From positions 124,001-188,000 of the IMG/VR virus record IMGVR_UViG_3300050120_000230: a stretch of 64,000 nt of DNA, one strand, 5' to 3'. Position 1 is the stretch's first letter, and each line of letters opens with the position of its first letter. Positions 35,263 to 49,092 of the stretch are shown piece after piece. Below the pieces are notes generated by a model that saw nothing but the letters and a program-made list of their open reading frames with translations, was not told where the DNA came from and did no database searches. The translations under genes were made by a program, and so were the position numbers.

Positions 35263-35264
35263 AT

Positions 35265-35338
35265 TGGCAGGGGTGGAGAGAATCGAACTCTCGTCTTGGG
35301 TTTTGGAGACCCCTACTCTACCATTGAGCTACACCCCT
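35265..35338 (-). tRNA. tRNA-Trp(CCA)
   Basis: Cloverleaf, loop CT-CCA-AA, CCA end. Confidence 0.93.
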
Positions 35339-35418
35339 ATTAGATAACTTGGGATACCACCGGTTGCAAATCAGGATATATACGTAATACTTACGTATTT
35401 CCGGGGGCTATCACGACA

Positions 35419-35688
35419 ATGACTACTCCATCTACGATCAACGGCGCCACTGTGACTATTGTCAGGATTGGCAAATCTCTCGTTTCCTTGCAGTCACAAA
35501 ATCTCGTCACACAACCCGCAAGCGCCGGGCAGATGTCCTTCCAGATCAATTGCGATTCGAAGCTGCTGATCGCGAACTCGAAGATCACGATTTTCTCTTC
35601 GACGTTCGGTGCGAAGATCGACAACGTCACCGTCCTCGCCGATCATTTCGGCGCGGGTAGTCACCAGATCACTGGCCACGTCATCTGA
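35419..35688 (+). CDS. Hypothetical protein
   Basis: 89-aa ORF inside the tRNA array, antisense to it. Confidence 0.6.
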   Translation: MTTPSTINGATVTIVRIGKSLVSLQSQNLVTQPASAGQMSFQINCDSKLLIANSKITIFSSTFGAKIDNVTVLADHFGAGSHQITGHVI

Positions 35689-35692
35689 ATTG

Positions 35693-35782
35693 AGAATCAG
35701 GTGGGACTCGAACCCACGGGGACAAGCTTCGCTTGTTACGGGGGTAAAAACCCCGCCCTCTCGCCGCTGAGGTGACTGATCC
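35693..35782 (-). tRNA. Atypical tRNA-Lys(TTT) with long variable arm
   Basis: Loop TT-TTT-AC, V-arm ACAAGC-GAA-GCTTGT, U73, no CCA. Confidence 0.7.
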
Positions 35783-35822
35783 ATTTATTGAACATTCGTA
35801 GAGATATCAATACTATTGGTTA

Positions 35823-36416
35823 ATGTTTTGTGAATTTTGTTCTGACTTGATTTCTTCTCGATATGGTTCTGGTCGTTTTTGTTCTTCCAAAAGTGCCAGA
35901 GGTTTCAGCACCAAAGCTAGGCGCGCAGAGATCAATTCCAAGGTCAGCAAGAAATTATCGAATAGACCGTCTGGTCGAACGCTCGATTGCGTGACCATTT
36001 CTTTTCTGGCTGACAAACGACGTGAAAAACTCATGGAACTGCCATGGGAATCAATTGGCCTATACGCCAAAAAATCTCGCGTTCTGGGTGAACAAAATCA
36101 CCGGTGCAATGGATGCAACCTTGATGAATGGCGGGGCCAGCCGTTGGTTTTGGAAATCGAACATAAAGATGGCAATAACCAAAACAACGCCCGAGAAAAT
36201 CTCGAAGGCTTGTGTCCGAATTGCCATAGCCAAACGCCAACATGGCGTGGTCGTAACAAGGGTCGATCTAAATCAATCTCAGATCAAGAATTCATCGAAC
36301 ATCTGCAAGCTGCTAGCAGCATTCATCGCGCGCTGTTGAGCTTAGGTCTCTCAGCGAAGGGAACGAATTATAACCGTGCGAGAACTCTCATCCAATCACA
36401 TGGCATTTCTATGTGA
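35823..36416 (+). CDS. HNH homing endonuclease
   Basis: CNGC...LEIEHKDGNNQNN..ENL..LCPNCHSQT. Confidence 0.92.
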   Translation: MFCEFCSDLISSRYGSGRFCSSKSARGFSTKARRAEINSKVSKKLSNRPSGRTLDCVTISFLADKRREKLMELPWESIGLYAKKSRVLGEQNHRCNGCNLDEWRGQPLVLEIEHKDGNNQNNARENLEGLCPNCHSQTPTWRGRNKGRSKSISDQEFIEHLQAASSIHRALLSLGLSAKGTNYNRARTLIQSHGISM

Positions 36417-36492
36417 TGGTGAACCCCCTCGGATTTGAACCGAGAATCTCCTCCTTAAAAGGGAGTTGCATTAACCGTTATGCTAGGGGTCC
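36417..36492 (-). tRNA. tRNA-Lys(TTT)
   Basis: Loop CT-TTT-AA, CCA end. Confidence 0.9.
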
Positions 36493-36493
36493 G

Positions 36494-36634
36494 TTAGAAA
36501 GTAGCATTCAGAGGTGAATTCATCTCGGGATATTCTGTCGCGAGAACAGACCCTTCATATGTTCCCCAGCCAACGAAAGCCAGAACTAAAGCAATGATTG
36601 TGGTGCCGAGCGCGATTTTGAATGTCTTTTGCAT
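36494..36634 (-). CDS. Small membrane protein inside the tRNA operon
   Basis: MQKTFKIALGTTIIALVLAFVGWG..., 46 aa, not in the ORF track. Confidence 0.5.
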   Translation of the reverse strand: MQKTFKIALGTTIIALVLAFVGWGTYEGSVLATEYPEMNSPLNATF

Positions 36635-36678
36635 AGCAACAATTTATCTCTCTGAGATGTTGCGATGCAATATATTTG

Positions 36679-36762
36679 AGGGCGCGGTGGGACTCGAACC
36701 CACGGTGTGCTTACGCAAAAAGATTAAGAGTCTTCCCCCTTCGCCGCTCGGGACACGCGCCC
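36679..36762 (-). tRNA. Atypical tRNA-Lys(CTT) with long variable arm
   Basis: Loop CT-CTT-AA, V-arm TGC-GTAA-GCA, U73, no CCA. Confidence 0.75.
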
Positions 36763-36766
36763 ATGT

Positions 36767-36841
36767 TGGTGGATCGGGAGAGATTCGAACTCTCGACCTT
36801 GGGCTTAAGAGGCCCCTGCACTACCGCTGTGCTACCAATCC
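36767..36841 (-). tRNA. tRNA-Lys(CTT)
   Basis: Canonical cloverleaf, CCA end. Confidence 0.93.
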
Positions 36842-36845
36842 ATTG

Positions 36846-36933
36846 TAGTCCTGCTTGGATTCGAACCAAGATCACGCCCCGATCTGGGACTACGGATTAT
36901 AAATCCGACGCTCTGCCGTTGAGCTACAGGACC
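36846..36933 (-). tRNA. tRNA-Ile(TAT) with long variable arm
   Basis: Loop TT-TAT-AA, V-arm GTCCC-AGATC-GGGGC. Confidence 0.8.
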
Positions 36934-36991
36934 AAAGGGTCTGCTGTAGCAGCGATATTCGTTTACTCATTTGGTCCTCCTCTTTTTGCTG

Positions 36992-37075
36992 TGCGCTCGG
37001 CTGGGCTCGAACCAGCAAGACCTTCCGGCCGCTCCGTTTTAAGTGGAGTGTGGCTACCAGTTTCACCACGAGCGC
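36992..37075 (-). tRNA. tRNA-Leu(TAA)
   Basis: Type II cloverleaf, loop CT-TAA-AA. Confidence 0.9.
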
Positions 37076-37080
37076 ATGAT

Positions 37081-37162
37081 TGGTGCCCCTCCTCGGATTC
37101 GAACCGAGATGCTTTCGCGCCAGATTTTGAATCTGGTGTGTCTACCGTTCCACCAGAGGGGC
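37081..37162 (-). tRNA. tRNA-Leu(CAA)
   Basis: Type II cloverleaf, CCA end. Confidence 0.93.
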
Positions 37163-37205
37163 ATAGAAACCTGAAGATCACATGGCGTGAACCTCAAGTC
37201 CATAT

Positions 37206-37287
37206 TGGTGCGGATGGAGGGAATCGAACCCCCACGCTTTCGCAACAGATTCTAAATCTGCCGTGGCTACCGTTACACCACATCCGC
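37206..37287 (-). tRNA. tRNA-Leu(TAG)
   Basis: Type II cloverleaf, CCA end. Confidence 0.93.
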
Positions 37288-37295
37288 ATTGTAGT

Positions 37296-37382
37296 TGGTG
37301 CGAATAGCAGGACTCGAACCTGCACGGCCTTTCGGCCACTGACTTCTGAAGCCAGCGCGTCTACCTATTCCGCCATACTCGC
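37296..37382 (-). tRNA. tRNA-Leu(CAG)
   Basis: Type II cloverleaf, CCA end. Confidence 0.93.
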
Positions 37383-37390
37383 ATTGTATT

Positions 37391-37472
37391 TGGTGCCCAG
37401 AACAGGACTCGAACCTGCACGCCGAAGCAACATCCTCTCAGAATGCCGTGTCTACCGTTTCACCATCTGGGC
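37391..37472 (-). tRNA. tRNA-Leu(GAG)
   Basis: Type II cloverleaf, CCA end. Confidence 0.9.
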
Positions 37473-37480
37473 ATTGTAGT

Positions 37481-37556
37481 TGGCACAACCGACTGGGCTC
37501 GAACCAGTGGCCTCATCCTTCGGAGGGATGCGCTCTTCCAACTGAGCTACGGCTGT
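37481..37556 (-). tRNA. tRNA-Arg(CCG)
   Basis: Loop CT-CCG-AA, CCA end. Confidence 0.93.
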
Positions 37557-37568
37557 AAATGATGTGCT

Positions 37569-37645
37569 TGGCAGAGACGACAGGGATCGAACCTGTGACC
37601 TCCTGATTCGTAGTCAGGCGCTCGTTCCGGCTGAGCTACGCCTCT
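37569..37645 (-). tRNA. tRNA-Arg(ACG)
   Basis: Loop CT-ACG-AA, CCA end. Confidence 0.93.
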
Positions 37646-37670
37646 GCAAAGCACATCATCGAAGTGTGTT

Positions 37671-37746
37671 TGGCTGGAACGGAGGGGATCGAACCCACGA
37701 CCTTCAATTCCGCAAACTGACGCTCTTCCAACTGAGCTACGTCCCA
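37671..37746 (-). tRNA. tRNA-Arg(GCG)
   Basis: Loop TT-GCG-GA, CCA end; this anticodon is uncommon in bacteria. Confidence 0.85.
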
Positions 37747-37840
37747 GCAAAACACACTTTATCAACGCCCCCGACCCATGGAAAAGCCGGGGGCGCCTAT
37801 TCATCAACCTCACCGGTGGCGACCGGCGAAGCCTTGGATT

Positions 37841-37855
37841 CAATTGTCAAAGATC
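37841..37855 (-). promoter_or_regulatory. rrn-like boxA antitermination site
   Basis: GATCTTTGACAATTG between the attenuator and the first tRNA. Confidence 0.6.
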
Positions 37856-37886
37856 GGTTAAGGTTGAAGGGAAGAAAGCGAACAAG

Positions 37887-37919
37887 AAAAAACCCCGGAG
37901 GCGGTGGCCCTCGGGGTTC
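37887..37919 (-). terminator. Attenuator terminator of the minus-strand tRNA operon
   Basis: GAACCCCGAG-ggccaccgc-CTCCGGGGTT followed by a T-run. Confidence 0.85.
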
Positions 37920-37948
37920 GTGTAGCTCTGAAGATTTTGGGAAGGCTT

Positions 37949-38050
37949 TTAGCCGTTACTCCCACCATCACCATGCACACGACTCCCCGAGCCCGCCAAC
38001 CACTTCAGTCGGAGGGTTTTCAGTCGGAGAGTGGCGAGGCGCCGGTTCAT
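37949..38050 (-). CDS. Leader peptide of the Arg/Leu/Lys/Trp tRNA operon (MNRRLATLRLKTLRLKWLAGSGSRVHGDGGSNG)
   Basis: AAGGA RBS, 33 codons, 13 of residues 3-18 are R/L/K/W; overlaps the antiterminator arm. Confidence 0.8.
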   Translation of the reverse strand: MNRRLATLRLKTLRLKWLAGSGSRVHGDGGSNG

Positions 38051-38113
38051 GGAAAGGTTCAGAGTCCTTGGTGTTGGGTTGCAAACGCAGCAGTTGCCAC
38101 GTCGTTCAGATTT

Positions 38114-38145
38114 TATTTATCACCGATGTGCTGACCATCTGTCAA
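38114..38145 (-). promoter_or_regulatory. Composite TTGACA / ATAAATA promoter of the minus-strand tRNA operon
   Basis: TTGACA at 38145-38140 and ATAAATA at 38120-38114. Confidence 0.7.
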
Positions 38146-38171
38146 CATTCTTTTTTGTGGTGAACCAAAAA

Positions 38172-38435
38172 TTATCTGATGGCGGCTTCCTTGCCGCCCA
38201 TTTTGGTGTAGAGCCGCTCGGCCGTCGCCAAGCTCTCGCGTCGGCTGATGGGCTGATAAGCCCAGTTGCCTTTGTGGTCTTTACTGAACACAACGTAGTA
38301 GGGCGACGGCTTTCCATTCCGAGACACATTTTCGGCGCGAGCCAGCGCATATCGCCCATCGCTCTTGAGAATAGTCCAGCTTGGGGTCGATTGCATCGTG
38401 CTTTCGACGAGGTTCATTAGGTCACGCATTCTCAT
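38172..38435 (-). CDS. Hypothetical late protein
   Basis: MRMRDLMNLVES start, CTAAATA at 38441. Confidence 0.65.
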   Translation of the reverse strand: MRMRDLMNLVESTMQSTPSWTILKSDGRYALARAENVSRNGKPSPYYVVFSKDHKGNWAYQPISRRESLATAERLYTKMGGKEAAIR

Positions 38436-38458
38436 GACGGTATTTAGCGGCTGACCGA

Positions 38459-38857
38459 TCATGACCACACGATCTTGAACAGCAGGCGATCTTCGTCTCG
38501 GCTGAAGCAGAAATAGGTCATCCAAATCGAATGTGATCCGATCAGAGGTGAATCTCTTTTTTTCCGGCGAGTGCAAGAGAAGGCGGCCCAAGGCCCGAAG
38601 GCCATCGTCGCCAACATGGGCATTTCATCCAAAAACCGTTCGTTTTGGAACGTCGGCGTGGCCCATCGATAGTTGAGTTTGTTGTCCCGCACGCATTCAA
38701 GCGCCGTTCTGAGATGAATGGGCGAAGAGTGTGAAACTTCGTAGTCGGTTCTGTTTTTCGCGTGCAGATCGATGTAACCGGAGGGGATCATGGAGAACTC
38801 TTGCTCTCCCCCGAAAGATTGTTGAACGACGCGCACCCAATTTCGTTTCCGCTTCAT
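38459..38857 (-). CDS. Hypothetical protein, FxxxxDAxxFKLxW family
   Basis: FSRDEDRLLFKIVWS. Confidence 0.65.
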   Translation of the reverse strand: MKRKRNWVRVVQQSFGGEQEFSMIPSGYIDLHAKNRTDYEVSHSSPIHLRTALECVRDNKLNYRWATPTFQNERFLDEMPMLATMAFGPWAAFSCTRRKKRDSPLIGSHSIWMTYFCFSRDEDRLLFKIVWS

Positions 38858-39075
38858 GAGGTGGGGTAGGCTTTGAGCAGTTCCTCGAACATGTAGCCGA
38901 AGCACGAATCCCACGTCTGACCAGACGGGCCGACTTCGTTACGAAGAGCTTGTCGAACTGCTCTATCGGCTTCCCAGACGGCGATGTGTGCGAGCGCCTT
39001 GGCAAGCGTCGGTTCTTTGCAGGCGATGGCGATCTGCTCTTGCAAGGGCGTAATGGTCATGACTTCGTCAGCCAT
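38854..39075 (-). CDS. Hypothetical protein
   Basis: Coupled small ORF. Confidence 0.6.
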   Translation of the reverse strand: MADEVMTITPLQEQIAIACKEPTLAKALAHIAVWEADRAVRQALRNEVGPSGQTWDSCFGYMFEELLKAYPTS

Positions 39076-39280
39076 TGATGATCCTCTGGATTTCTTCAGG
39101 ACTCTTATCCTGCCAAAAAGTCCCGGTCGGGTAGATATATTTTTTGAACATATCGGTAGCCCACGTCCCGCCGGGGTTCAGTAGGTCTTCGGACGTTGCG
39201 TTGATGACGCAGTCTGCTGTCGCCCAAGCTCTAGCCATTGCTTCTTCGTCGGCTGGATCGACGGCCGACACTTGGGTCAC
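39068..39280 (-). CDS. Hypothetical protein
   Basis: Coupled small ORF. Confidence 0.6.
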   Translation of the reverse strand: MTQVSAVDPADEEAMARAWATADCVINATSEDLLNPGGTWATDMFKKYIYPTGTFWQDKSPEEIQRIING

Positions 39281-40095
39281 AGCATGTCAGCCGTGATTTC
39301 GAGGGGAAGAAGCTTGGCGATGTAAGCTTTCTCAAGCTCCAAGGCGACCTGTCCGTGTTCGGTCTTCAACCAACTCGCGGCGCGATGTGCGGCCGAAATG
39401 TAGTGTGACACGCCGGGGTCGGCCTTGGCCTGTTGTTCCAAAAACTCCGGGTCAAGGTGGATGCGTTTGTCGGTGACGATGTTCACGGCCACGCGGTGTA
39501 GGCGCTTATCGAAGGTAGTCGTCCGTTTGATCTTGGTGGCCACGTTTTTGTCGGTGATGTCCCTGACCATATAGGTCGGCGTCGTCAACTCGGCGTTGAA
39601 GCCATGCCCGGCGGGGCGGGCGTCTTTATCGAAGATCGTCTTCCAGACTTCGCCACGATGTTTCCATTCTGCGCTCGGAACGGAACCGGGTCGTTCGTTG
39701 TCGTGCCACCAGAAGTGTTTCACGAGGCCAAGCCGCATGAACTTGTTGATCCACTCGTTGTGTTCGCAGCGAATGATGCCGTAGACGGCGCCGTCATAGG
39801 GGATGATGGAAACTTCGAAGTCGAAATCGTAGTCGGGGTTTCGGTATCCGGTTTTCTTGATCTCGCGTTGTGAATCCATCATCTCTTGATAGACGCCGGA
39901 CAGCACTCTGGTCGGCATGGGTTTTTCCCGTGCCAAGGCGTCGTCGATGTTTCTCTGACTGGTGTTCGCGTAGAGATCGAGAATCTTGGCGTGCGTGAGC
40001 GCCTTGAGAGTCTCGCGCCATTGGGCGAGCCCGCGTTCGATCTCGAATATGTTGGTGGTCGTGAACTTCACGCCCCGACCAATGTGCCAGCCCAT
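39277..40095 (-). CDS. Hypothetical protein
   Basis: Long ORF; start placed downstream of a TTGACG promoter near 40150. Confidence 0.75.
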   Translation of the reverse strand: MGWHIGRGVKFTTTNIFEIERGLAQWRETLKALTHAKILDLYANTSQRNIDDALAREKPMPTRVLSGVYQEMMDSQREIKKTGYRNPDYDFDFEVSIIPYDGAVYGIIRCEHNEWINKFMRLGLVKHFWWHDNERPGSVPSAEWKHRGEVWKTIFDKDARPAGHGFNAELTTPTYMVRDITDKNVATKIKRTTTFDKRLHRVAVNIVTDKRIHLDPEFLEQQAKADPGVSHYISAAHRAASWLKTEHGQVALELEKAYIAKLLPLEITADML

Positions 40096-40199
40096 CTGAT
40101 TCCACGCCCGCTTGTGATCGCGCGACCCTATAGGCCGTAATTTTTTCGTCAACCAGTTTGATCCGCATAAATATCGGACAGTCATTTGTCCGGTGAGTC

Positions 40200-41291
40200 A
40201 TGCCTCTTGTTAACAACGTCCGCACTACACCCGGCTCGGACGTAAAATTCTTCGCGAACACGACGCCCGATGCAAACTCGGTTGCTAAGGTCGATGCTGT
40301 CCCGACTGTTGCTGGACCTCCGGGTCCGCAAGGTGTTGGCATTCGTTCTATTACGATTTCCGACAGCGATGACCTTCTTTTCACTCTAACTGACAACACC
40401 ACTATTGACGCAGGTACTCTGCCGCCCGGTCCCACTGGTCCAACTGGACCTACTGGTGTCACTGGGCCGCCGGGTCCGATTGGTAATATCGGCCCACAGG
40501 GTATCAAGGGCGACAAAGGCGACACGGGTGCAACCGGCACGGCTGGTATTCCGGGTGTTCAAGGTCCGAAGGGCGACAAAGGCGACACTGGTCTGACGGG
40601 TTCCGTTGGCCCGGAAGGCGATCACGTCACCAACGCGGTCATCAACGGCTCGAATCACATCATCTTCACGCTGAGCGACAACAGCACTATCGACGCTGGT
40701 CTGTTGCCTCCCGGCCCGACCGGCAACGCAGGCCCCACGGGTCCGCAGGGTCCTCAAGGCGTGGACGTGGCGAACGCGACGATCAACGGTTCGAACCATC
40801 TCATCTTCACGCTGTCGAACTCGGCTGTTATCGATGCCGGTCCTTTGCCGCCCGGCCCCACGGGTGGCATTGGTCCGACTGGACCGGCTGGTCCCGCTGG
40901 TCCGCAAGGTAACGCTTCGACGGTGGCTGGCCCGGCCGGACCCGCAGGCCCGAACTTCGAAACGGTCGTCAATCTCAACACCGCCACCGGAACGGTCACG
41001 CTCGATCTTGGCTCGAACAGTTTCTACAATCTGACCCTCACCGGCAACGTCACCATCGCGTTCTCCAACACGGCGCTGACGACTCGTTCCTATACGGCCG
41101 TCGTTTCCATCAAACAGAATTCCAGCGGTGCGGGAACGTTCACGGTGACGTGGCCGGGAACCTGCAACACGCCGGGCAACGTCGTCTATTCGCAATCGAC
41201 GGGTCTGGGCGCCACTGACCTCTACACCGTGTTCACGATCAACGGCGGGGCGAGCTACTTCCTCAGCCAAATTGGGCAACTGTATTCCTAA
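40200..41291 (+). CDS. Collagen-like fibre protein
   Basis: GPxG triplets, repeated A.INGSNH.IFTLS..IDAG.LP module, late promoter at 40167. Confidence 0.88.
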   Translation: MPLVNNVRTTPGSDVKFFANTTPDANSVAKVDAVPTVAGPPGPQGVGIRSITISDSDDLLFTLTDNTTIDAGTLPPGPTGPTGPTGVTGPPGPIGNIGPQGIKGDKGDTGATGTAGIPGVQGPKGDKGDTGLTGSVGPEGDHVTNAVINGSNHIIFTLSDNSTIDAGLLPPGPTGNAGPTGPQGPQGVDVANATINGSNHLIFTLSNSAVIDAGPLPPGPTGGIGPTGPAGPAGPQGNASTVAGPAGPAGPNFETVVNLNTATGTVTLDLGSNSFYNLTLTGNVTIAFSNTALTTRSYTAVVSIKQNSSGAGTFTVTWPGTCNTPGNVVYSQSTGLGATDLYTVFTINGGASYFLSQIGQLYS

Positions 41292-42538
41292 TGCTCTACC
41301 GCTATCTTCGCCCTCTGCCGGTCCTCGCTACGCCCATTGGTTCGGTGCCTCTACCGTTGACGATGGATCGCGGAGCTTTGAGCACTATTTGGAAAGACGT
41401 TCCTACGCCAATCGCTATGCGTTCGGCTGATGGCACGAAAGTCGTGTTTGGCTCGACAGTGTCGGGAGCCCCGCCGAAGAGCTACATCCAAGGCTACGAT
41501 TTCACGAACGCTATGGGGACTGTCTTCTCTACGGCCGGGAACGGCGTGGGTATCCTGATGGACACGCCCGGTGTCACCAACTCAACTGGTTTCCAACCGA
41601 CCATTCGAAACATCGGCATTAGCCCGGACGCGCATTACGCGATTGGTATCGCTTCGACGAACGGCAAGATCGGCACCGGCAGCATCGCGGAATACACTTC
41701 GATTCAGTATTTCAAGCTGACCAGTGGTCAATACACGCTTGTCTTCCAGCGTCCGTCTACCAAGAACAAGGACCGGAACCAACTTCTCAATTTCTACGAT
41801 GCGACGAGCTACACGCAGAACTTGGAGTTCACGGACGGCACAACAAACGAGGCCCTGCAAAACCTCCTGTTGAGCGACACTGCCTCGCCGACTGTGGTCA
41901 ATCAGTTCACGACGGCCCTATTCATCAAGGTGCTCACCTCATTCACGGTCGGGGGCGATGTCGTTGTCGTCTACACGACCTTGCAGTCCGGCCCGCAGAA
42001 CACGGCCATCCTATACGATGTCTACCGGCCTGCCGCAGGCTCCGTCTTCACGGCTATCGTGCAAGGTGTTCAGTTCCCCGGCTACGACAACACCGTTTGC
42101 GCGGCATTGCCGCAGTTCGAAGCCATGCCCGGCAACAAGGTCGCCATGTCGTTGACTTGCACGACCATCTCTTTGAACCCGAGCCTGTTCCTCTATCAGT
42201 ATGATGGAGCCGGTGGTTTCACGGCTCTGCCCATCGACGTGCCGCTATCTGGTCCGGCACAAGGATCGACGTTCAACAATTACAACCAGAATACGGTCCA
42301 GATGTCTTATGGCGTCGGCGCCAGCAAAAACATTCTGGCGATCAACAATGCGAGTGGCCAATTCCTCTATCGCTACACGGGAACTGGTCTTCAAAAGGTC
42401 CCGCACGCTCAATTTTTGCCGAATCCGGCAGTCGTGACATATATTTGTGCAGACTACCTCGGCAGGCTTTTTGTCTATTGTAACAACCAGTTCGGCGGCA
42501 GCACCGCGACCGGACAACTCTTCGATCTCGGGGTCTAA
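41291..42538 (+). CDS. Putative receptor-binding/virion protein
   Basis: 415 aa, beta-rich, TAATG-coupled to the collagen gene. Confidence 0.75.
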   Translation: MLYRYLRPLPVLATPIGSVPLPLTMDRGALSTIWKDVPTPIAMRSADGTKVVFGSTVSGAPPKSYIQGYDFTNAMGTVFSTAGNGVGILMDTPGVTNSTGFQPTIRNIGISPDAHYAIGIASTNGKIGTGSIAEYTSIQYFKLTSGQYTLVFQRPSTKNKDRNQLLNFYDATSYTQNLEFTDGTTNEALQNLLLSDTASPTVVNQFTTALFIKVLTSFTVGGDVVVVYTTLQSGPQNTAILYDVYRPAAGSVFTAIVQGVQFPGYDNTVCAALPQFEAMPGNKVAMSLTCTTISLNPSLFLYQYDGAGGFTALPIDVPLSGPAQGSTFNNYNQNTVQMSYGVGASKNILAINNASGQFLYRYTGTGLQKVPHAQFLPNPAVVTYICADYLGRLFVYCNNQFGGSTATGQLFDLGV

Positions 42539-42559
42539 CTTTTTTCGGAACATTTTTTA

Positions 42560-42590
42560 TTGACGGGCTTTTGGTGCTCTGACATAAATA
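42560..42590 (+). promoter_or_regulatory. Composite TTGACG / ATAAATA promoter of the plus-strand tRNA operon
   Basis: TTGACG at 42560-42565 and ATAAATA at 42584-42590. Confidence 0.7.
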
Positions 42591-42642
42591 GGTTTCACAA
42601 ACGGGGTTCGCCCCGCCAATCGTTCTAGGAGACTGCTTTTCA

Positions 42643-42786
42643 ATGTCGCTCGTGGCCAACGCCATTTTCGCAACCATTACCACCGCGCCAATCGGCGTGG
42701 CGATGGCTGCTGGCGTTGTCGTGGCCGCCCCGATGTTCCAAAATCAGCCGGTTTTCCAACCCGTGACCGGAGGCCGTATGTCATAA
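42643..42786 (+). CDS. Leader peptide of the Ile/Val/Gln/Met/Pro/Asn/Ala/Thr/Phe tRNA operon (MSLVANAIFATITTAPIGVAMAAGVVVAAPMFQNQPVFQPVTGGRMS)
   Basis: AGGAGA RBS, 47 codons, 39 of them for amino acids whose tRNAs lie downstream. Confidence 0.85.
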   Translation: MSLVANAIFATITTAPIGVAMAAGVVVAAPMFQNQPVFQPVTGGRMS

Positions 42787-42814
42787 ACTGACCAAACTCA
42801 GTTTCAGACATGCG

Positions 42815-42848
42815 AAGCCTCCGAGGGGAAACCTCCGGGGGCTTTTTT
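42815..42848 (+). terminator. Attenuator terminator of the plus-strand tRNA operon
   Basis: AAGCCTCCGAGG-ggaaa-CCTCCGGGGGC followed by T6. Confidence 0.85.
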
Positions 42849-42891
42849 AATGCCCTGAAACCAAGCCAATACCACCGCACTGCGATTTTGT

Positions 42892-42966
42892 AGTCTCTTA
42901 GCTCAGCGGTAGAGCAGCGTCTTGATAAGGCGAAGGTCACTGGTTCAATCCCAGTAGGGACTACCA
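42892..42966 (+). tRNA. tRNA-Ile(GAT)
   Basis: Cloverleaf, CCA end. Confidence 0.93.
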
Positions 42967-42981
42967 AATCGCAGGACTTAC

Positions 42982-43056
42982 GGGCGAATAACTCAGCGGT
43001 AGAGTGCCTCTTTCACACGGAGGAAGCCGGGGGTTCGATCCCCTCTTCGCCCACCA
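42982..43056 (+). tRNA. tRNA-Val(CAC)
   Basis: Cloverleaf, CCA end. Confidence 0.93.
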
Positions 43057-43084
43057 CTACTCGATGAGTGACGTAGCTCATCAA

Positions 43085-43100
43085 GGTCTTTGACATCGTT
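43085..43100 (+). promoter_or_regulatory. rrn-like boxA antitermination site
   Basis: GGTCTTTGACATCGTT followed by a GC-rich hairpin. Confidence 0.6.
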
Positions 43101-43160
43101 GATAGCGTGAAATAACGGCCGCTCCCGTGATCGGGGGCGGCCGACTAAGAAGAGTTTTGC

Positions 43161-43233
43161 TGAGGATTAGTTCAGTTGGTAGAACGCCACACTCTGAATG
43201 TGGATGTCCGAGGTTCGAGTCCTTGATCCTCAG
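43161..43233 (+). tRNA. tRNA-Gln(CTG)
   Basis: Loop CT-CTG-AA; no CCA; acceptor stem extended by 13 bp. Confidence 0.88.
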
Positions 43234-43290
43234 CAAAACTCTTCTAGTTTTTTCACAAGCGTCCGTCGCAAGACGGCGCCTGTGAACTAA

Positions 43291-43375
43291 TGGGGAATGG
43301 TGTAATGGTAACATCCCTGACTTTGAATCAGGAGACGAGGAGTTTATGTAGGTTCGAGCCCTACTTCCCCAGCCA
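43291..43375 (+). tRNA. tRNA-Gln(TTG) with enlarged variable region
   Basis: Loop CT-TTG-AA, 15-nt variable region, CCA end. Confidence 0.85.
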
Positions 43376-43397
43376 TATTTTACGCGATGTGTTTTGG

Positions 43398-43475
43398 TGC
43401 GGGATGGTAGCAGTCTGGTAGCTCGTTAGCCTCATAAGCTAAAGGTCAGCGGTTCAAATCCGCTTCCCGCACCCA
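43398..43475 (+). tRNA. tRNA-Met(CAT), initiator-like body
   Basis: fMet-like D and T arms, but anticodon stem TTAGC/GCTAA lacks the three G-C pairs. Confidence 0.85.
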
Positions 43476-43495
43476 AACACATCGCGAACCTTTGA

Positions 43496-43573
43496 CGCGG
43501 GAAGGACAAGACAGTTAGTCACTAGCCTCATAAGCTAGACATCTGGCAGATGCGAGCACTGCTCCCGCACCCA
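43496..43573 (+). tRNA. Divergent tRNA-Met(CAT)-like gene
   Basis: C1xA72, loop CT-CAT-AA, non-canonical D and T loops, CCA end. Confidence 0.6.
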
Positions 43574-43648
43574 AACTTGGCACGGTGATGAACCGGTAAG
43601 TCCACAGAGTTATTGACTTGGTGCTACGAAAATCCGTAGCTGCAAGGT

Positions 43649-43981
43649 ATGAATGATCCACCCAAATTCGTCCGAGCCAGCCGCGAATATCGAGAGCATC
43701 TCATCGCTTTCGTTCAGCGGGCAGTTTGGGCGAGAGGACAGCCGGGTTTCGAGTTCGATGTGATGGGACGAACGTTCCTGATCGCGACCGAGACTGACTA
43801 CCTTCCGGGTTGGTCAGCCCGGCCTCTAACTCAACCGGACTTGATCTTCTTCAAAATGTTGTCGCGAGAACGCGATGACAACCACTGGGGCGCCTATTGG
43901 CGTCGCGGCAAGGGGATGAAGGTTTACGGAAACAGCACCGTATTCGAGCGGGACATGCTTTTCCTCAAGTTCGCAGAATAA
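43649..43981 (+). CDS. Hypothetical protein
   Basis: 110 aa, C-terminus FERDMLFLKF. Confidence 0.7.
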   Translation: MNDPPKFVRASREYREHLIAFVQRAVWARGQPGFEFDVMGRTFLIATETDYLPGWSARPLTQPDLIFFKMLSRERDDNHWGAYWRRGKGMKVYGNSTVFERDMLFLKFAE

Positions 43982-44146
43982 GCGAAATATCGTACAACAC
44001 GAAAAGCGATAAATCGTGCAAGGAATCATCGGGATCAGCGTCGGCAGTTCCTCCCCTCGGGGTGTGAAAACGGACCCCCGGTGACTTAGGCTAGAGGGTT
44101 GTAGGTGACCTGTATTTGACTGGGAACCTTCGTCCATGTGTTTTGT

Positions 44147-44223
44147 CAGGGTGTAGCTCAGTCTGGTAGAGTGGCGTCCTCGGATGGCGAGGGTCGCAGG
44201 TTCAAATCCTGCCACCCTGACCA
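44147..44223 (+). tRNA. tRNA-Pro(CGG)
   Basis: Loop CT-CGG-AT, CCA end. Confidence 0.9.
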
Positions 44224-44240
44224 AACACATGGTTCACCAA

Positions 44241-44393
44241 ATGGATGTGCTTTCCGAGAGGCATGTTGTGCATCGTCAAGAACAATCACCGTCCGTAGAG
44301 GGACGCCCGAGCGGGTTGCGGAGATTGTAGGAGACGATGTGCCAAGCGCGCGAACGGCTGCAAATCGGCATGTCTCGCGGTAAGCACATCCAT
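44241..44393 (+). ncRNA. Candidate ~150-nt rod-like ncRNA
   Basis: Ends pair (ATGGATGTGCTT..AAGCACATCCAT); internal stems GCATCGTC/GACGATGT and ACAATC/GATTGT. Confidence 0.5.
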
Positions 44394-44395
44394 GA

Positions 44396-44471
44396 TGGAT
44401 AGTAGCTCAGTTGGTAGAGCTTTCGGTTGTTACCCGAATGGTCGCAGGTTCGAGCCCTGCCTATCCAGCCA
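44396..44471 (+). tRNA. tRNA-Asn(GTT), variant loop
   Basis: Loop TT-GTT-AC, CCA end. Confidence 0.9.
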
Positions 44472-44490
44472 AAATGACCTTCGGGTCTGA

Positions 44491-44565
44491 TTGGACGTAG
44501 CACAATGGTAGTGCAACTCCCTGTTAAGGAGAAGGTTGTAGGTTCGAGTCCTACCGTCCGAGCCA
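44491..44565 (+). tRNA. tRNA-Asn(GTT)
   Basis: Loop CT-GTT-AA, CCA end. Confidence 0.92.
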
Positions 44566-44655
44566 TTTCTGGGTGGGCTGCAACCCCCAACTTCATCCAT
44601 CGGGTGAAGAGGTGAGACGCACAAAGCGCGTCTCTGACAAAGCGCAGCACATCAT

Positions 44656-44731
44656 GGGGCCATAGCTCAGTTGGTAGAGCGATTCCTCGGCAGGGAATAG
44701 GTCGCCGGTTCGACTCCGGCTGGCTCCACCA
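44656..44731 (+). tRNA. tRNA-Ala(GGC)
   Basis: G3:U70, loop TC-GGC-AG (C33), CCA end. Confidence 0.88.
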
Positions 44732-44837
44732 TTAAAGAAAGCCCCGCTGTTTCCAGCGAGGCTCCCTAGACCGAATCCACCACCGCACCGAAGCGCGGAC
44801 ATCAAAGGTGGACATCGTCACAAGGGATGTCAAGACC

Positions 44838-44887
44838 CGCTGTCCAAGGCTTGGACGGCACTCGCTGTCCAAGGCTTGGACAGCACT
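44838..44887. repeat. Tandem 25-bp hairpin repeat
   Basis: CGCTGTCCAAGGCTTGGAC(G/A)GCACT x2. Confidence 0.85.
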
Positions 44888-44984
44888 CCGCACGGTGATG
44901 AGCCGATAAGTCGGCAGATTTTGCCCACCAAAAAAGGCCCCGGCGAACCGGGGCCTTGATGGCACTGCACCGAAGTGCGGATGC

Positions 44985-45182
44985 TTAGGCGGTTTCGGCG
45001 TCCGAGCGGGTCGCGTATTCGGCCTTCAGGGATTCGAGGATCGACTGCTTGGCGGTGGCGTCGGTGACCGACGTTTCGCCGAGTTCGCGTTCGACCTTGG
45101 AAATGGCGTTCTTGATGTGCGGGGTTGCCATCTTCGACACCGGGGTTTCCGTGGTGCCGGACTTCCAGACTGCTTCAGCCAC
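44985..45182 (-). CDS. Hypothetical protein
   Basis: 65 aa, GGAGG RBS; M.T.HI.NAI motif; followed by a terminator. Confidence 0.7.
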   Translation of the reverse strand: MAEAVWKSGTTETPVSKMATPHIKNAISKVERELGETSVTDATAKQSILESLKAEYATRSDAETA

Positions 45183-45304
45183 AAGGGCCTCCTTGGTAGG
45201 TGGGTGGGAGTGCTAACCGGTTTGGTTAACGAAAACCATATATCCACCCCTGCGGCGTCATGTCAACAGCACAAAATCGTGCACTGCTCGTTGAGGGAAA
45301 ACAC

Positions 45305-45378
45305 GGGGTAATAGCTCAATGGTCGAGCACCGGCTTCGCAAGTCGGGGATCAGGGTTCGATTCCCTGTTACTCCACCA
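45305..45378 (+). tRNA. tRNA-Ala(CGC)
   Basis: G3:U70, CCA end. Confidence 0.92.
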
Positions 45379-45403
45379 AACATAAATAGTTTCAACTACA
45401 TAT

Positions 45404-45479
45404 GCTGTCTTAGCTCAGTTGGTAGAGCGCCGTATTGGTAATGCGGAGGTGGTGGGTTCGATCCCCGCAGTCAGCACCA
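45404..45479 (+). tRNA. tRNA-Thr(GGT)
   Basis: Cloverleaf, CCA end. Confidence 0.93.
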
Positions 45480-45482
45480 TTT

Positions 45483-45559
45483 CAGGGTATAGCGCAGCAT
45501 GGTAGCGCGTCACGTCGGGAACGTGAAGGTCGCAGGTTCAAATCCTGCTATCCTGACCA
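45483..45559 (+). tRNA. tRNA-Pro(GGG)
   Basis: Loop TC-GGG-AA (C33, A37), CCA end. Confidence 0.88.
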
Positions 45560-45565
45560 ATTAGG

Positions 45566-45871
45566 TCAATCCATACAGAACGGATTGGCGATGTTCGTCA
45601 GCGGCACAGTGTCCAAGATGATCGGGTTTTTGAAGAACTCGGACGTAAATTGATGCGAACCATTCGGGTTCATATATCGACGAGTTGCGGCCGTTTGGGC
45701 TCCCTTGACGGTTTTGAATACGCCGCTGAACCACATGATTTTATCAGCATCGCGTGGTGAGGTAACGCCGTACTGCCAAACGGTCATACCTTTCGGGTGT
45801 TCGATCCCTCTGGCATAGAACTTCTGCTCAATGGGAGCGTCATTCTCCGTGATGATTTCTCTCATACGCAT
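45566..45871 (-). CDS. Hypothetical late protein
   Basis: MRMREIITEND start, CTAAATA at 45877. Confidence 0.65.
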   Translation of the reverse strand: MRMREIITENDAPIEQKFYARGIEHPKGMTVWQYGVTSPRDADKIMWFSGVFKTVKGAQTAATRRYMNPNGSHQFTSEFFKNPIILDTVPLTNIANPFCMD

Positions 45872-45904
45872 ATGAATATTTAGGCCGCATGGCCAAACAG
45901 ACAT

Positions 45905-45981
45905 CGGGGTGTAGCTCAGCTTGATAGAGCATCCGGTTTGGGACCGGAGGGTCGGAGGTTTGAGTCCTCTCGCCCCGACCA
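45905..45981 (+). tRNA. tRNA-Pro(TGG)
   Basis: Loop TT-TGG-GA, CCA end. Confidence 0.92.
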
Positions 45982-46010
45982 ATTCAGAGACCTTCCCAAA
46001 GGGTCTCTAC

Positions 46011-46087
46011 GGTAATGTAGCTCAGTCAGGTAGAGCAGCGGGCTCATAACTCGCGTGTCGCTGGTTCGATCCCAGCCATTACCACCA
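46011..46087 (+). tRNA. tRNA(CAT), elongator Met or Ile2
   Basis: Loop CT-CAT-AA, A73, CCA end. Confidence 0.9.
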
Positions 46088-46088
46088 C

Positions 46089-46163
46089 GGACGATTAACT
46101 CAGCGGTAGAGTGCCTCTATGACATGGAGGAAGCCACTGGTTCGATCCCAGTATCGTCCACCA
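46089..46163 (+). tRNA. tRNA-Val(GAC)
   Basis: Loop AT-GAC-AT, CCA end. Confidence 0.9.
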
Positions 46164-46225
46164 ATTTACTTGACGAAACGCCCGTCCATGAGATCATATG
46201 TTGATCTTGCAAAGGGAGGGCATCC

Positions 46226-46501
46226 ATGACGACTGTGAAACTCTCCGAAGCGGAACACAACGCTCTCTCACTTCTGGTTCGCTCGGGCGGCTCGATCCTC
46301 ACGTCGGCCATTCCCGATAAGAACGAGAAGGACGTGTTTGACAACGTCGAGGCAGGCATCAAGGTCTACGTGAAACTTGAGACCCGTGGTCTGGTTGTCG
46401 TGACCGAGGAAGAGCCGTTCGAACTTGAAGACGGCACCGAGTTCCAGTTCACGAACGAAGTCTACATCACCGACGAAGGTCGGCACGCTATCAACCGCTA
46501 A
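46226..46501 (+). CDS. Hypothetical protein
   Basis: 91 aa, GGAGG RBS. Confidence 0.75.
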   Translation: MTTVKLSEAEHNALSLLVRSGGSILTSAIPDKNEKDVFDNVEAGIKVYVKLETRGLVVVTEEEPFELEDGTEFQFTNEVYITDEGRHAINR

Positions 46502-46564
46502 CAGGCCACATATGGCCTATTAGGCGCCGGAAACGGTTCTAATAGGCCAACTATGGCCTCTTAT

Positions 46565-46639
46565 GCTTGGGTAGCTCAGGGGTAGAGCAGTGGGCTGAAA
46601 ATCCGCGTGTCGTTGGTTCGATTCCAACTCCAAGCACCA
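46565..46639 (+). tRNA. tRNA-Phe(GAA)
   Basis: Loop CT-GAA-AA, CCA end. Confidence 0.93.
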
Positions 46640-46809
46640 TTTTGGTTATTTTGACCGCAAGGTAGATCATACCGCCCGGCCAAAGCAAACCGCCCCACAA
46701 AACTTGGCACAGAAATGTGCACAAGTCGAAGTGGTTGGATTTGATCTCTATGACCTGAAGAAGGCCCCAGAAGATCAATCCAATCAAAGAGTAAACAATC
46801 CATGGGCTC

Positions 46810-47940
46810 ATGCCCATATTTAGAGAGGAACGGTCCCTTGGAGTTTCACGGCTAAGCCCAGAGCGCCTTAATCGGTATCTGGCACTGCAAGATTTGACCG
46901 ACGCATCGTCGGGCGAACACGCAATCAACCTCGTGCTGGACAAGCTGGTAACGGCAATTGAGCAATGGTCGGGCCTCAAGGCAGACATCGTTCGGTCCAC
47001 TCCTATCGTTTCCGTTCGGGACAACTACGACCGGCTCTACTATGAGCCGGACGCGGTCGCACGCTCTGCGCGCTATTCCCACTACGTTGACGATGAGCAC
47101 ATTCTTCGCACCCACACGACGGCGGCCATTCCCGGCCTGCTGACGGAGACCACGGCCGACCGGCTGATGGTTCTACCGGGTCTTGTCTATCGCCGCGATG
47201 TGATGGATCGGATGCATGTGGGAGAACCGCACCAAGTCGATCTCTGGGTCGCTAGGCGGTCAAGGCTCCGTCGTGATGATCTGTTGAAGATGATCGGCGC
47301 GGTTCTCAACGCGATCCTGCCCGGCTGCGAATACCGCTGCAACGAGACAATCCATCCATACACAGTAAATGGCTTGGAGGTCGAGGTTCGTGTGGACGAC
47401 CGGTGGATAGAGGTGCTCGAATGTGGGGAAATCCATCCGTGGCTTTTGAACGACAACGGCTTGCCTAGTCAGGAGTGGTCGGGCTTGGCGATGGGGCTGG
47501 GCCTAGACCGCCTTGTAATGCTCCTGAAGGGCATGGACGACATTCGGCTGCTTCGCAGCACGGATGCTCGTATTGCCCGCCAGATGGCTTCCCTGAGCCC
47601 CTACGAGGCTGTTTCGAACCAACCTATGACCAAGCGGGATATGTCGCTCACGGTGAGTGATCCTGACATCGAATTGATCGGAGATCGCATCCGGGTGGCG
47701 CTCGGTGATCGGGCTGACTGGTTGGAAGAGATCGTGGTCGTTTCGGCATCGAGTTGGGATGAAGTCCCGGCCGTGGCGAGGGAGCGTCTTGGGATGGCGC
47801 CTGAGCACACGAACCTGTTGCTGCGGCTCATCATGCGCTCACCGTCCGAGAGCATTCCGAAAGAGATCGCCAACGAAATCTACGACATAGTCTATGGCGA
47901 GCTTCACGAAGGATCGGCGGGGTATCAGCGTGTATCATAA
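46810..47940 (+). CDS. Single-chain PheRS-alpha-related class II ligase with C-terminal FDX-ACB-like domain
   Basis: LRTHTTA, motif 2 GLVYRRD..DR.H...PHQ.D, HPYT, W.EVLECG..HP, motif 3 GLAMGLGLDRL.ML..G..DIRLL, then RDMS domain. Confidence 0.88.
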   Translation: MPIFREERSLGVSRLSPERLNRYLALQDLTDASSGEHAINLVLDKLVTAIEQWSGLKADIVRSTPIVSVRDNYDRLYYEPDAVARSARYSHYVDDEHILRTHTTAAIPGLLTETTADRLMVLPGLVYRRDVMDRMHVGEPHQVDLWVARRSRLRRDDLLKMIGAVLNAILPGCEYRCNETIHPYTVNGLEVEVRVDDRWIEVLECGEIHPWLLNDNGLPSQEWSGLAMGLGLDRLVMLLKGMDDIRLLRSTDARIARQMASLSPYEAVSNQPMTKRDMSLTVSDPDIELIGDRIRVALGDRADWLEEIVVVSASSWDEVPAVARERLGMAPEHTNLLLRLIMRSPSESIPKEIANEIYDIVYGELHEGSAGYQRVS

Positions 47941-47958
47941 ACAAGACGGGAAGGCCCT

Positions 47959-48088
47959 TAATGCATCGTTTATGATGCACTACGGTCGATTTCACAGTCT
48001 AGTGCATCAGTTTTGATGCATTACGCAATTCGCCAAAAATGACGAGTTATGAACAAAAATAGCCCTAACTCGTCAAAATTGGCGAATT
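47959..48088. repeat. Two nested-palindrome inverted repeats
   Basis: 47959-48023 and 48027-48088; each arm is itself a quasi-palindrome; a third copy of the design lies at 46503-46559. Confidence 0.75.
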
Positions 48089-48090
48089 AT

Positions 48091-48165
48091 GTCGATGTAG
48101 CTTAGTGGCTAAAGCATCCGGTTGAAACCCGGAGATCGGCGGTTCGAACCCGCCCATCGGCACCA
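48091..48165 (+). tRNA. tRNA-Phe(GAA), variant
   Basis: Loop TT-GAA-AC, divergent body, CCA end. Confidence 0.9.
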
Positions 48166-48224
48166 TTATACTTGACCAATAGTCAGACTGCGGTAGATTG
48201 AACTTAAGCAGAAGGAGTCGACCC

Positions 48225-48500
48225 ATGACTGTGCGCGGAAAGTTCAATATAACCCTCGGTGGCGCCATGACGTTCTTGGGTCGTGCGGTAATCGTCGGCG
48301 TGGTCATTGCCTCGATAGGTCTCGTGGTCCATTTGGTCTCATCCGAGATGCATCTGGAACTTCAGAACCGCGAGGCGCGCGGCGTCATGGAAGGTCAGTG
48401 CTCGCAAATGAAGTGGTCGCTGGACACGAACGCCTACAGCAAGGACAACATGCCGATCTACAAGCACGTCTACGCTGAAATCTGCAAGGACGTGAACTAA
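48225..48500 (+). CDS. Small membrane protein
   Basis: AAGGAG RBS, one hydrophobic helix. Confidence 0.7.
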   Translation: MTVRGKFNITLGGAMTFLGRAVIVGVVIASIGLVVHLVSSEMHLELQNREARGVMEGQCSQMKWSLDTNAYSKDNMPIYKHVYAEICKDVN

Positions 48501-48751
48501 AGCCAGAACGTCTTGAAGAGGACGGCATCGCGTTCGTCCTCGAAGCCGATCACCGGCGACGAGACATAGGGTAGGGCGCCATCCGGGTTGTCCGAAAACA
48601 CCTTCGTTTGCTCTTCCCACTCGCCTTTGACGTTGACGATCAGCCATTCACGGACGTGCGGCTGAACCCGGCCGCGACGGCATCGGTTGTTTCTCTCGTC
48701 CGTTTCGAAATTGTATTGCCCAGTCTCGGGCGTCAGTCTGAGCCAGATCAT
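48497..48751 (-). CDS. Hypothetical protein, FxxxxDAxxFKLxW family
   Basis: VREWL..NV...FEDERDAVLFKTFWL. Confidence 0.75.
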   Translation of the reverse strand: MIWLRLTPETGQYNFETDERNNRCRRGRVQPHVREWLIVNVKGEWEEQTKVFSDNPDGALPYVSSPVIGFEDERDAVLFKTFWL

Positions 48752-48768
48752 CTGACATAAATATCGGT

Positions 48769-49083
48769 ATGCGAGATTGGATCAAGCTTTTTGAAGATCA
48801 AGACGATGATGCTCAGGCGCTCTACGCTCGTGAGCATTACATCGAGCACATGATCGTGCACACTTGCGCTCAGGCTGGGATGGACTTGGTCTCTCAGCGG
48901 CCGATCCTCTACGATGAGCAGGACAATCGCACCGCGACCATTCGTGTCGCCGACTCGGTGACGTTGGAGCAACTCGCCAAGATCACGCATCTTGGGTCTG
49001 GTTGGACGATCCTTGGCGCCCCCAATGGGTACGGCGTGAGCGTCCAATTCATCGTCGATCCGAAGCTCGACCTAGGGAAATAA
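48769..49083 (+). CDS. Hypothetical late protein
   Basis: MRDWIKLFED start, ATAAATA at 48757. Confidence 0.7.
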   Translation: MRDWIKLFEDQDDDAQALYAREHYIEHMIVHTCAQAGMDLVSQRPILYDEQDNRTATIRVADSVTLEQLAKITHLGSGWTILGAPNGYGVSVQFIVDPKLDLGK

Positions 49084-49092
49084 CCGCAAGGG

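Follow-up and report, generated by a model that had tools for sequence, protein, structure and literature searches.

A predicted leader-peptide attenuator in front of tRNA genes in a giant soil phage

We found that a giant soil phage carries a short open reading frame (ORF) followed by a predicted intrinsic terminator in front of an array of 17 tRNA genes, and that this ORF is built almost exclusively from the amino acids carried by those tRNAs. Our data, which are entirely computational, are best explained by a ribosome-mediated (i.e., trp-type) transcription attenuator that regulates tRNA genes rather than biosynthetic genes, such that the phage probably switches its tRNA genes on when decoding of the corresponding codons runs slow. 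The DNA analyzed here (referred to as the window) is a 64,000-nucleotide stretch of IMGVR_UViG_3300050120_000230, a viral contig of 415,409 bp, in which window position 1 is contig position 124,001. The window encodes a large terminase (10873-12465), tail tube, and collagen-like tail fibres. By terminase, the nearest cultured relatives are Sinorhizobium phage Phosso (58%) and Agrobacterium phage Atu_ph07 (56%), and the contig therefore represents a giant tailed phage, probably of a Rhizobiales host. ARAGORN and Rfam agree on 31 tRNAs within the window, arranged in two divergent arrays, referred to here as array 1 (minus strand) and array 2 (plus strand), each of which is preceded by its own candidate leader ORF (leader 1 and leader 2, respectively). 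The positions of these features are collected in Table 1.

An earlier note, made from the sequence alone, had described the promoter-like site, ribosome-binding site, leader ORF, terminator and antiterminator in front of array 2, and had interpreted them as an attenuator whose leader covers every anticodon of the downstream tRNAs. We found that every one of these features is present and that the interpretation is supported by the computational tests applied here. In leader 2, 39 of 47 residues (38 of 47 codons by wobble rules) belong to the nine amino acids whose tRNAs follow, and all 14 distinct anticodons of array 2 have a Watson-Crick cognate codon in the ORF. The peptide contains no Lys or Trp, one Leu and one Arg. 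We next questioned whether this match could arise by chance. The background fraction of cognate codons in the long ORFs of the window is 0.406, which gives a binomial P = 4e-8, and none of 13,069 sliding 46-codon windows in these gene proxies reached 37 cognate codons (the maximum is 33). Leader 2 also ranked first of 655 small ORFs called mechanically. However, when the peptide was held fixed and synonymous codons were resampled, neither full coverage of the 14 anticodons (P = 0.11) nor the number of cognate codons (P = 0.07) was significant. These data indicate that the match is at the level of amino acid, or tRNA family, and that the coverage of every anticodon emphasized in the earlier note adds nothing beyond amino-acid composition.

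Table 1. Positions of the features of the two leader-array systems within the window. L003, L004, L009, L103, L105 and L096 are related loci described in the text.
Position	Strand	Feature	Details
42560..42590	+	Promoter-like site of leader 2	TTGACG (42560-42565), 18-nt spacer, then cATAAATAg (ATAAATA 42584-42590); the pattern TTGAC-N15-20-WAAATAG occurs twice in the window against 0.02 expected; the same type precedes the orthologous leaders in L009, L103 and L105 and both L096 leaders
42603..42614	+	Predicted 5' UTR hairpin GGGG-UUCG-CCCC	Equivalent GC stem with a UUCG or CUCG loop in L003, L004, L009, L103 and L105
42627..42632	+	Shine-Dalgarno AGGAGA	10 nt before the ATG; the block CTAGGAGnCTGnnTTTCAATG is invariant in four loci, with variants in L103 and L105
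42643..42786	+	Leader 2 ORF, 47 codons plus stop	TAA at 42784-42786; proposed sensing codons 2-42, tail GGRMS
42670..42710	+	Conserved predicted hairpin inside the ORF (ORF nt 28-68)	Candidate RNA polymerase pause or synchronising hairpin; predicted in all six loci and in the alignment fold
42768..42782	+	Region 2, upstream arm of the predicted antiterminator (CGGAGGCCGUAUGUC)	Codons 42-47; GGAGG core invariant, extension with compensatory changes
42807..42823	+	Region 3, downstream arm of the predicted antiterminator	Overlaps the 5' arm of the terminator
42815..42848	+	Predicted intrinsic terminator	12-bp bulged stem (42815-42842) plus U6 (42843-42848); about -20 kcal/mol; local z-score -5.3
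42892..48165	+	tRNA array 2, 17 tRNAs	Ile, Val, Gln x2, Met x2, Pro x3, Asn x2, Ala x2, Thr, Val, Phe x2; same amino-acid set in L003, L004, L009, L103 and L105
46810..47940	+	Single-chain PheRS-alpha-like gene	Inside array 2, between the two tRNA-Phe genes; Pfam PF01409, E = 1e-34
43087		TCTTTGACA motif followed by a GC hairpin	Follows the second tRNA of array 2
44957..44934	-	Strong terminator of opposite-strand ORFs	Within array 2
38114..38145	-	Promoter-like site of leader 1	TTGACA (38145-38140) and gATAAATA (38121-38114); conserved in L003, L004, L009, L103 and L105
37949..38050	-	Leader 1 ORF, 33 codons	Six orthologues
38024..38032	-	Region 1 of leader 1	
37982..37990	-	Region 2 of leader 1	
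37887..37918	-	Predicted terminator of leader 1	-18 kcal/mol with U6
37845	-	TCTTTGACA motif followed by a GC hairpin	Between the leader 1 terminator and its first tRNA
35265..37746	-	tRNA array 1	Arg x3, Leu x5, Ile(UAU), Lys x4, Trp

We next asked whether other leaders match their arrays in the same manner. In leader 1, 13 of 17 codons at positions 2-18 are Arg, Leu, Lys or Trp against a background of 0.195 (P = 6e-7, with 0 of 14,925 windows matching it), and the two leaders are close to mirror images in composition. Furthermore, a more distant relative, locus L096 (Logan SRR10873859_19177, which carries a PheRS 70% identical), has differently composed arrays and two unrelated leaders. The first, a 31-codon ORF from position 5914 of that locus, has a core in which 16 of 20 residues are Tyr, Asn, Phe, Val, Met, Trp or Ile, and is followed by a terminator and by tRNAs for Tyr, Val, Ile, Ile, Val, Met, Asn, Phe, Trp and Phe. 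The second, a 34-codon ORF from position 13760, has residues 6-20 that are 14 of 15 Arg, Gln or Asp, and is followed by a terminator and by tRNAs for Arg, Asp, Asp, Gln, Gln and Arg, up to the contig end. In a 4x4 matrix of leader composition against array amino-acid set, observed over expected enrichment is highest on the diagonal in every row and column (diagonal binomial P values of 0.011, 1e-6, 6e-4 and 2e-6), and the true assignment ranks first of 24 permutations. Trp occurs only in the two leaders whose arrays hold tRNA-Trp, and Gln-rich and Asp-rich leaders occur only before Gln and Asp tRNAs. This covariation at the level of the whole system is the strongest argument against coincidence. 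It also bears on the possibility that the switch is real and depends on translation, but senses general translation capacity or transcription-translation coupling (i.e., ribosome availability or global starvation), with the composition match being a by-product, for example of the preferred codons of the phage. This possibility is favoured by the lack of significant codon choice given the peptide, by the tolerance of residues outside the matched set (Arg-His, Ser-Leu and Gly), and by the consideration that, with 9 of 20 amino acids as inputs, the device would respond to most kinds of translation stress. However, the four leaders, with four different compositions, each match their own array and not the others, Tyr, like Trp, appears only in leaders whose arrays hold those tRNAs, Leu is almost absent from a hydrophobic 47-mer whose Leu tRNAs sit in the other array, and no genic window reaches the observed fraction. 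We therefore consider it unlikely.

We next asked whether the match between leaders and arrays is a general property of DNA upstream of phage tRNAs. An unbiased scan, in which every small ORF within 650 nt upstream of each tRNA array was scored, returned the leaders as the best hits in 6 of 7 loci (the window, L004, L009, L103, L105 and L096). In L003 the leaders are missed because an upstream in-frame start lengthens the mechanical ORF. The same scan over the tRNA region of Phosso, covering 48 tRNAs in record positions 350-450 kb and tested as 135 ORFs with tight clusters or 16 with loose ones, found nothing (best P = 0.009, uncorrected). Thus, the match is not a general property of DNA upstream of phage tRNAs.

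To determine whether leader 2 is conserved, we used the PheRS-like gene inside array 2 as a handle to find related loci. Three syntenic loci, L003 (NCBI JAWVHG010000015.1, 569 kb), L004 (JGI Ga0207711_10001323) and L009 (IMGVR_UViG_3300046660_000488, 578 kb), have the same layout of a collagen fibre gene, a gene of about 400 aa, a small ORF and then the same tRNA array. A profile search with these peptides found 12 family members (P0121-P0132) in related metagenomic phages, and the DNA of two more loci, L103 and L105, was added. All 12 peptides are 46-47 aa with 35-41 residues in the tRNA-matched set, and none contains Tyr or Trp. In the six loci analyzed as DNA, frame and stop position are held, indels are in whole codons, the array encodes the same nine amino acids, and every anticodon has a wobble-cognate codon in the leader of that locus. 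Among homologues, 49 of 62 alternative residues at positions 2-42 stay in the matched set against 47% expected from single-base neighbours (P about 2e-7, not phylogenetically corrected), although this bias could partly reflect selection for hydrophobicity. Most family members carry residues outside the set early in the peptide (Ser-Leu at 2-3, Arg-His at 6-7) with no matching tRNA in the array, and Gly occurs in every leader without a Gly tRNA, although these are the G-rich structural codons. Variable sites are spread 12/14/17 over the three codon positions and nonsynonymous differences outnumber synonymous ones, which is not the signature of an ordinary protein but fits constraint on set membership and RNA structure.

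These observations also bear on whether leader 2 might encode a small hydrophobic (membrane) protein with its own function, in which case the hairpin would simply be its terminator, or that of the tail-fibre genes, the tRNAs would be transcribed by readthrough or from unrecognised promoters, and the match to the tRNAs would be coincidence. In agreement with this, the peptide is hydrophobic and conserved in 12 phages, gene callers annotate it as a gene, and substitutions within Ala/Val/Ile/Phe/Met are also what a membrane helix would show. Conversely, the peptide is nearly free of Leu, Phe is exchanged for Pro or Asn in homologues, the pattern of substitution is as described above, and the polar Arg/Leu/Lys and Arg/Gln/Asp leaders show the same tRNA matching. 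In addition, the last codons of the ORF are complementary to the terminator arm, and this complementarity is conserved. A Pfam scan of other window proteins, which did not include the leader itself, gave nothing relevant. Overall, we regard a membrane protein with a coincidental composition as unlikely.

We then asked whether the leader transcript supports two mutually exclusive structures. Folding of 42600-42850 gave a minimum-energy structure in which region 2 pairs with region 3 so that no terminator forms, while the 3' part folded alone gave a small hairpin plus the terminator (z = -4.7 and -5.3). The two states are close in energy, as expected of a switch. A simple consensus scan missed the terminator because of its bulge. 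The terminator is -18 to -24 kcal/mol with a U-run, and in all six orthologues of leader 2 it is -18 to -21 kcal/mol with U5-6. In these orthologues, a transcript truncated at the terminator loop pairs the 5' arm of the terminator with GGAGGC at ORF nt 126-133 (codons 42-45), just before the stop at codon 48. The alignment fold keeps this helix, with compensatory changes in its extension and apical hairpin, and nine pairs across the consensus fold show double changes. The duplex of regions 2 and 3 (-26.9 kcal/mol) is stronger than in 99.9% of codon-shuffled ORFs (P = 0.001). Leader 1 and both L096 leaders show the full trp-like layout (i.e., 1:2, 2:3 and 3:4 pairings), in which region 1 lies among the sensing codons and pairs with region 2, which otherwise pairs with the terminator arm. 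For leader 1, these pairings are predicted in six orthologues, but the 2:3 duplex alone is no better than shuffles, so that this case rests on conservation in six loci. The ORF also lacks a good Shine-Dalgarno sequence. The strong and conserved secondary structure, together with the flat variability across codon positions, raised the question of whether the region is an untranslated structured RNA (i.e., a processing or stability element, or a riboswitch that binds tRNA directly like a T-box) with an incidental open frame. We found no Rfam match at E <= 1, including T-box and known leaders, in 34000-50000, where only tRNA matches and sub-threshold chance hits were returned. Furthermore, the frame is preserved in the homologues, together with start, Shine-Dalgarno sequence and stop, and amino-acid composition, a property of the reading frame, tracks the tRNAs in four unrelated leaders. 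An untranslated element is therefore very unlikely.

Taken together, these data lead us to favour, with reasonable confidence, the following model, in which translation of the ORF, termination at the hairpin, the direction of the response, and tRNA supply rather than amino-acid supply as the physiological signal are all inferred. Transcription would start at the promoter-like site and a ribosome would load at AGGAGA and translate leader 2. If decoding is fast, the ribosome reaches the UAA, where it probably protects roughly 12-15 nt on each side and would thereby cover region 2, leaving region 3 free to form the terminator, and RNA polymerase stops 44 nt before the first tRNA. If any of the cognate aminoacyl-tRNAs is scarce, the ribosome would stall at or before about codon 36 (codons 2-36 contain all nine amino acids), region 2 would pair with region 3, and array 2, together with the PheRS gene within it, would be transcribed. 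Once phage tRNAs accumulate, leader translation would speed up and termination would resume, which amounts to a multi-input OR gate with negative feedback on decoding capacity. In agreement with this model, no promoter-like site lies between the terminator and the first tRNA of array 2. However, array 2 may not be a single transcript, as the earlier note had assumed in calling it an operon, since it contains opposite-strand ORFs with their own terminator and a copy of TCTTTGACA, so that distal tRNAs may have other inputs. The exact TCTTTGACA motif followed by a GC hairpin occurs only twice in the window and is conserved in relatives. Since no -10 element follows it at 16-19 nt in any locus, we consider it unlikely to be a sigma-70 promoter, although it could still be a processing site or a phage-specific start that partly bypasses the attenuators. 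The earlier note also predicted a third operon, for Gly, Ser, His, Asp, Glu, Cys and Tyr tRNAs, with its own matched leader. Such an operon was not located, as the search could not be extended to the rest of the 415-kb contig and tRNAs are too divergent between relatives (60-90% identity) to serve as probes, but a relative does have matched leaders before arrays that contain Asp and Tyr tRNAs.

Leader-peptide attenuators are known from amino-acid biosynthetic operons (trpL, hisL, leuL, thrL, ilvL/ivbL and pheL) and from pheST. As in those systems, a short ORF rich in regulatory codons sits between promoter and downstream genes, and a terminator competes with an antiterminator whose upstream arm could be occluded by a ribosome at the end of the ORF. 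Multi-amino-acid sensing would have precedents in ilv (Ile/Val/Leu) and thr (Thr/Ile), and pheST is likely a precedent for a target within the translation apparatus. In contrast, the genes downstream of leader 2 are tRNAs, with only the embedded PheRS-like gene falling within the classical scope, so that the output would replenish the decoder rather than the amino acid. In addition, nine amino-acid inputs are spread over about 40 codons instead of a short run, the element is carried by a phage and comes in sets that partition the tRNA repertoire, and it has no sequence or Rfam similarity to known leaders. T-box riboswitches likewise control translation-apparatus genes by terminator/antiterminator choice in response to tRNA status, but a T-box binds uncharged tRNA directly through a specifier codon and needs no translation, while here the signal is carried by a conserved ORF. 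In full-text literature searches, which did not reach most subscription journals, we found no description of leader-peptide attenuation of tRNA genes in phages or cells. If real, this device would show that phages regulate their tRNA supply by feedback on actual decoding speed, that a single attenuator can integrate nine amino-acid inputs, and that the grouping of tRNA genes into arrays has a regulatory logic. It would also offer a compact natural sensor of tRNA availability for synthetic biology. It bears on the long-standing question of whether phages carry tRNAs for codon-usage compensation or to replace depleted or cleaved host tRNAs. More tentatively, it is possible that in this clade of giant soil phages the tRNA repertoire is split into amino-acid-defined regulons, each guarded by its own matched leader peptide, which together deploy replacement tRNAs only when particular host tRNAs run short, for example after cleavage by host anticodon nucleases or after phage-induced host shut-off. 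This would make it an on-demand counter-defence and homeostasis circuit, not merely codon-usage compensation.

We also asked how widely these leaders could be found. Megablast and blastn against GenBank phages found only tRNA-level hits, and tblastn of the leader found nothing. In IMG/VR, the flanking 415-aa protein and the PheRS returned only the source contig, DNA patterns for both leaders of the window found only that contig and IMGVR_UViG_3300046660_000488, and back-translated patterns for the two L096 leaders found nothing. The leader alignment and a leader 1 pattern found nothing in GTDB genomes. Most PheRS homologues at 65-68% identity lie in cellular contexts without tRNA arrays, two further loci (L097 and L006) are cut inside the array, and the huge phage LR745206.1 has a 45% identical PheRS but no tRNA nearby. 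A 92-aa ORF after the L096 leader is not homologous to the 91-aa ORF in array 2. Large tailed phages such as T4, T5, Atu_ph07, AP-J-162 and Phosso also carry tRNA arrays interspersed with homing endonucleases and small ORFs, and these clusters are constitutively or temporally expressed. The papers on Atu_ph07 and AP-J-162 discuss tRNAs only in terms of codon usage and mention no leader. In Phosso, the arrays mix amino acids and none of the upstream small ORFs matches the array composition. A 54-aa ORF plus terminator with the same promoter type does precede the tRNA region of Phosso, but two more promoter-like sites follow it and its composition is uninformative. Phosso was treated as a negative control rather than as a member.

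We found that a single-chain PheRS-alpha-like gene (Pfam tRNA-synt_2d) sits between two tRNA-Phe(GAA) genes inside array 2, the plus-strand tRNA array. It is presumably under the same leader as the array, a leader that has three Phe codons. The closest homologues of this gene outside the phage clade (65-68% identity) lie in cellular contexts or carry Rhizobiales names, which hints at the host lineage and at a monomeric PheRS family shared by bacteria and giant phages. The two arrays also hold genes on the opposite strand, namely an HNH homing-endonuclease gene antisense inside array 1, the minus-strand array, and minus-strand small ORFs with a strong terminator inside array 2. Our data therefore indicate that the arrays are mosaics and may not be single clean operons. 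Several tRNAs of normally short classes (Lys-UUU, Lys-CUU, Ile-UAU, and Gln-UUG) are 85-91 nt long and score lower against the Rfam tRNA model. Long Asn and Gln tRNAs recur in relatives, and these tRNAs may have unusual extra arms or insertions.

Coordinates of additional features in and around the tRNA arrays and in related loci
Feature	Sequence	Position	Strand
PheRS-alpha-like gene	window	46810-47940	+
Motif TCTTTGACA, after the second tRNA of array 2	window	43087-43095	+
Motif TCTTTGACA, between the leader-1 terminator and the first tRNA of array 1	window	37845-37853	-
Promoter-type site, gene with ATG at 7027	window	6893-6922	+
Promoter-type site	window	42560-42591	+
Promoter-type site	window	38114-38145	-
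Long tRNAs (Lys-UUU, Lys-CUU, Ile-UAU, Gln-UUG)	window	35692-35782, 36678-36762, 36845-36933, 43291-43375	
HNH homing-endonuclease gene	window	35823-36416	+
Small ORFs with a strong terminator (44957-44934)	window	44732-45247	-
54-aa ORF followed by a terminator	Phosso, L109 (PV764938.1)	19668-19975 (about 419,670-419,975 of PV764938.1)	
Leader 1	L103	5600-5777	-
Leader 1	L105	6240-6342	-

We next considered sequence elements that are shared between the two arrays. The exact motif TCTTTGACA followed by a GC-rich hairpin occurs only twice in the window, once in association with each array, and its position is conserved in relatives (the loci designated L003, L004, L009, L105, and L090). No -10 element follows the motif, and a processing site or a phage-specific start are possibilities. 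In addition, three sites in the window share a promoter type, TTGAC-N17-19-(A/T)AAATA(G), which also drives an ordinary protein gene. The same type appears in relatives and in Sinorhizobium phage Phosso upstream of its tRNA region. Just upstream of its main tRNA region, Phosso has a 54-aa ORF ending in Arg-Gly-Gly-Thr-Lys-Ile-Ile, followed by a good terminator, with the same promoter type and a possible antiterminator (CCGGGUC pairing with GACCCGG). However, two further promoter-like sites follow this ORF, and its composition is uninformative because the array is mixed.

Lastly, we compared leader 1, the leader of array 1, with its counterparts in L103 and L105, two of the related loci. In these more distant orthologues, leader 1 carries an AUA (Ile) codon and a UUA or CUA (Leu) codon that the window's leader 1 lacks. 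Array 1 carries an Ile-UAU or CAU tRNA (possibly Ile2) and the matching Leu tRNAs. This hints that rare-codon decoders are also monitored.
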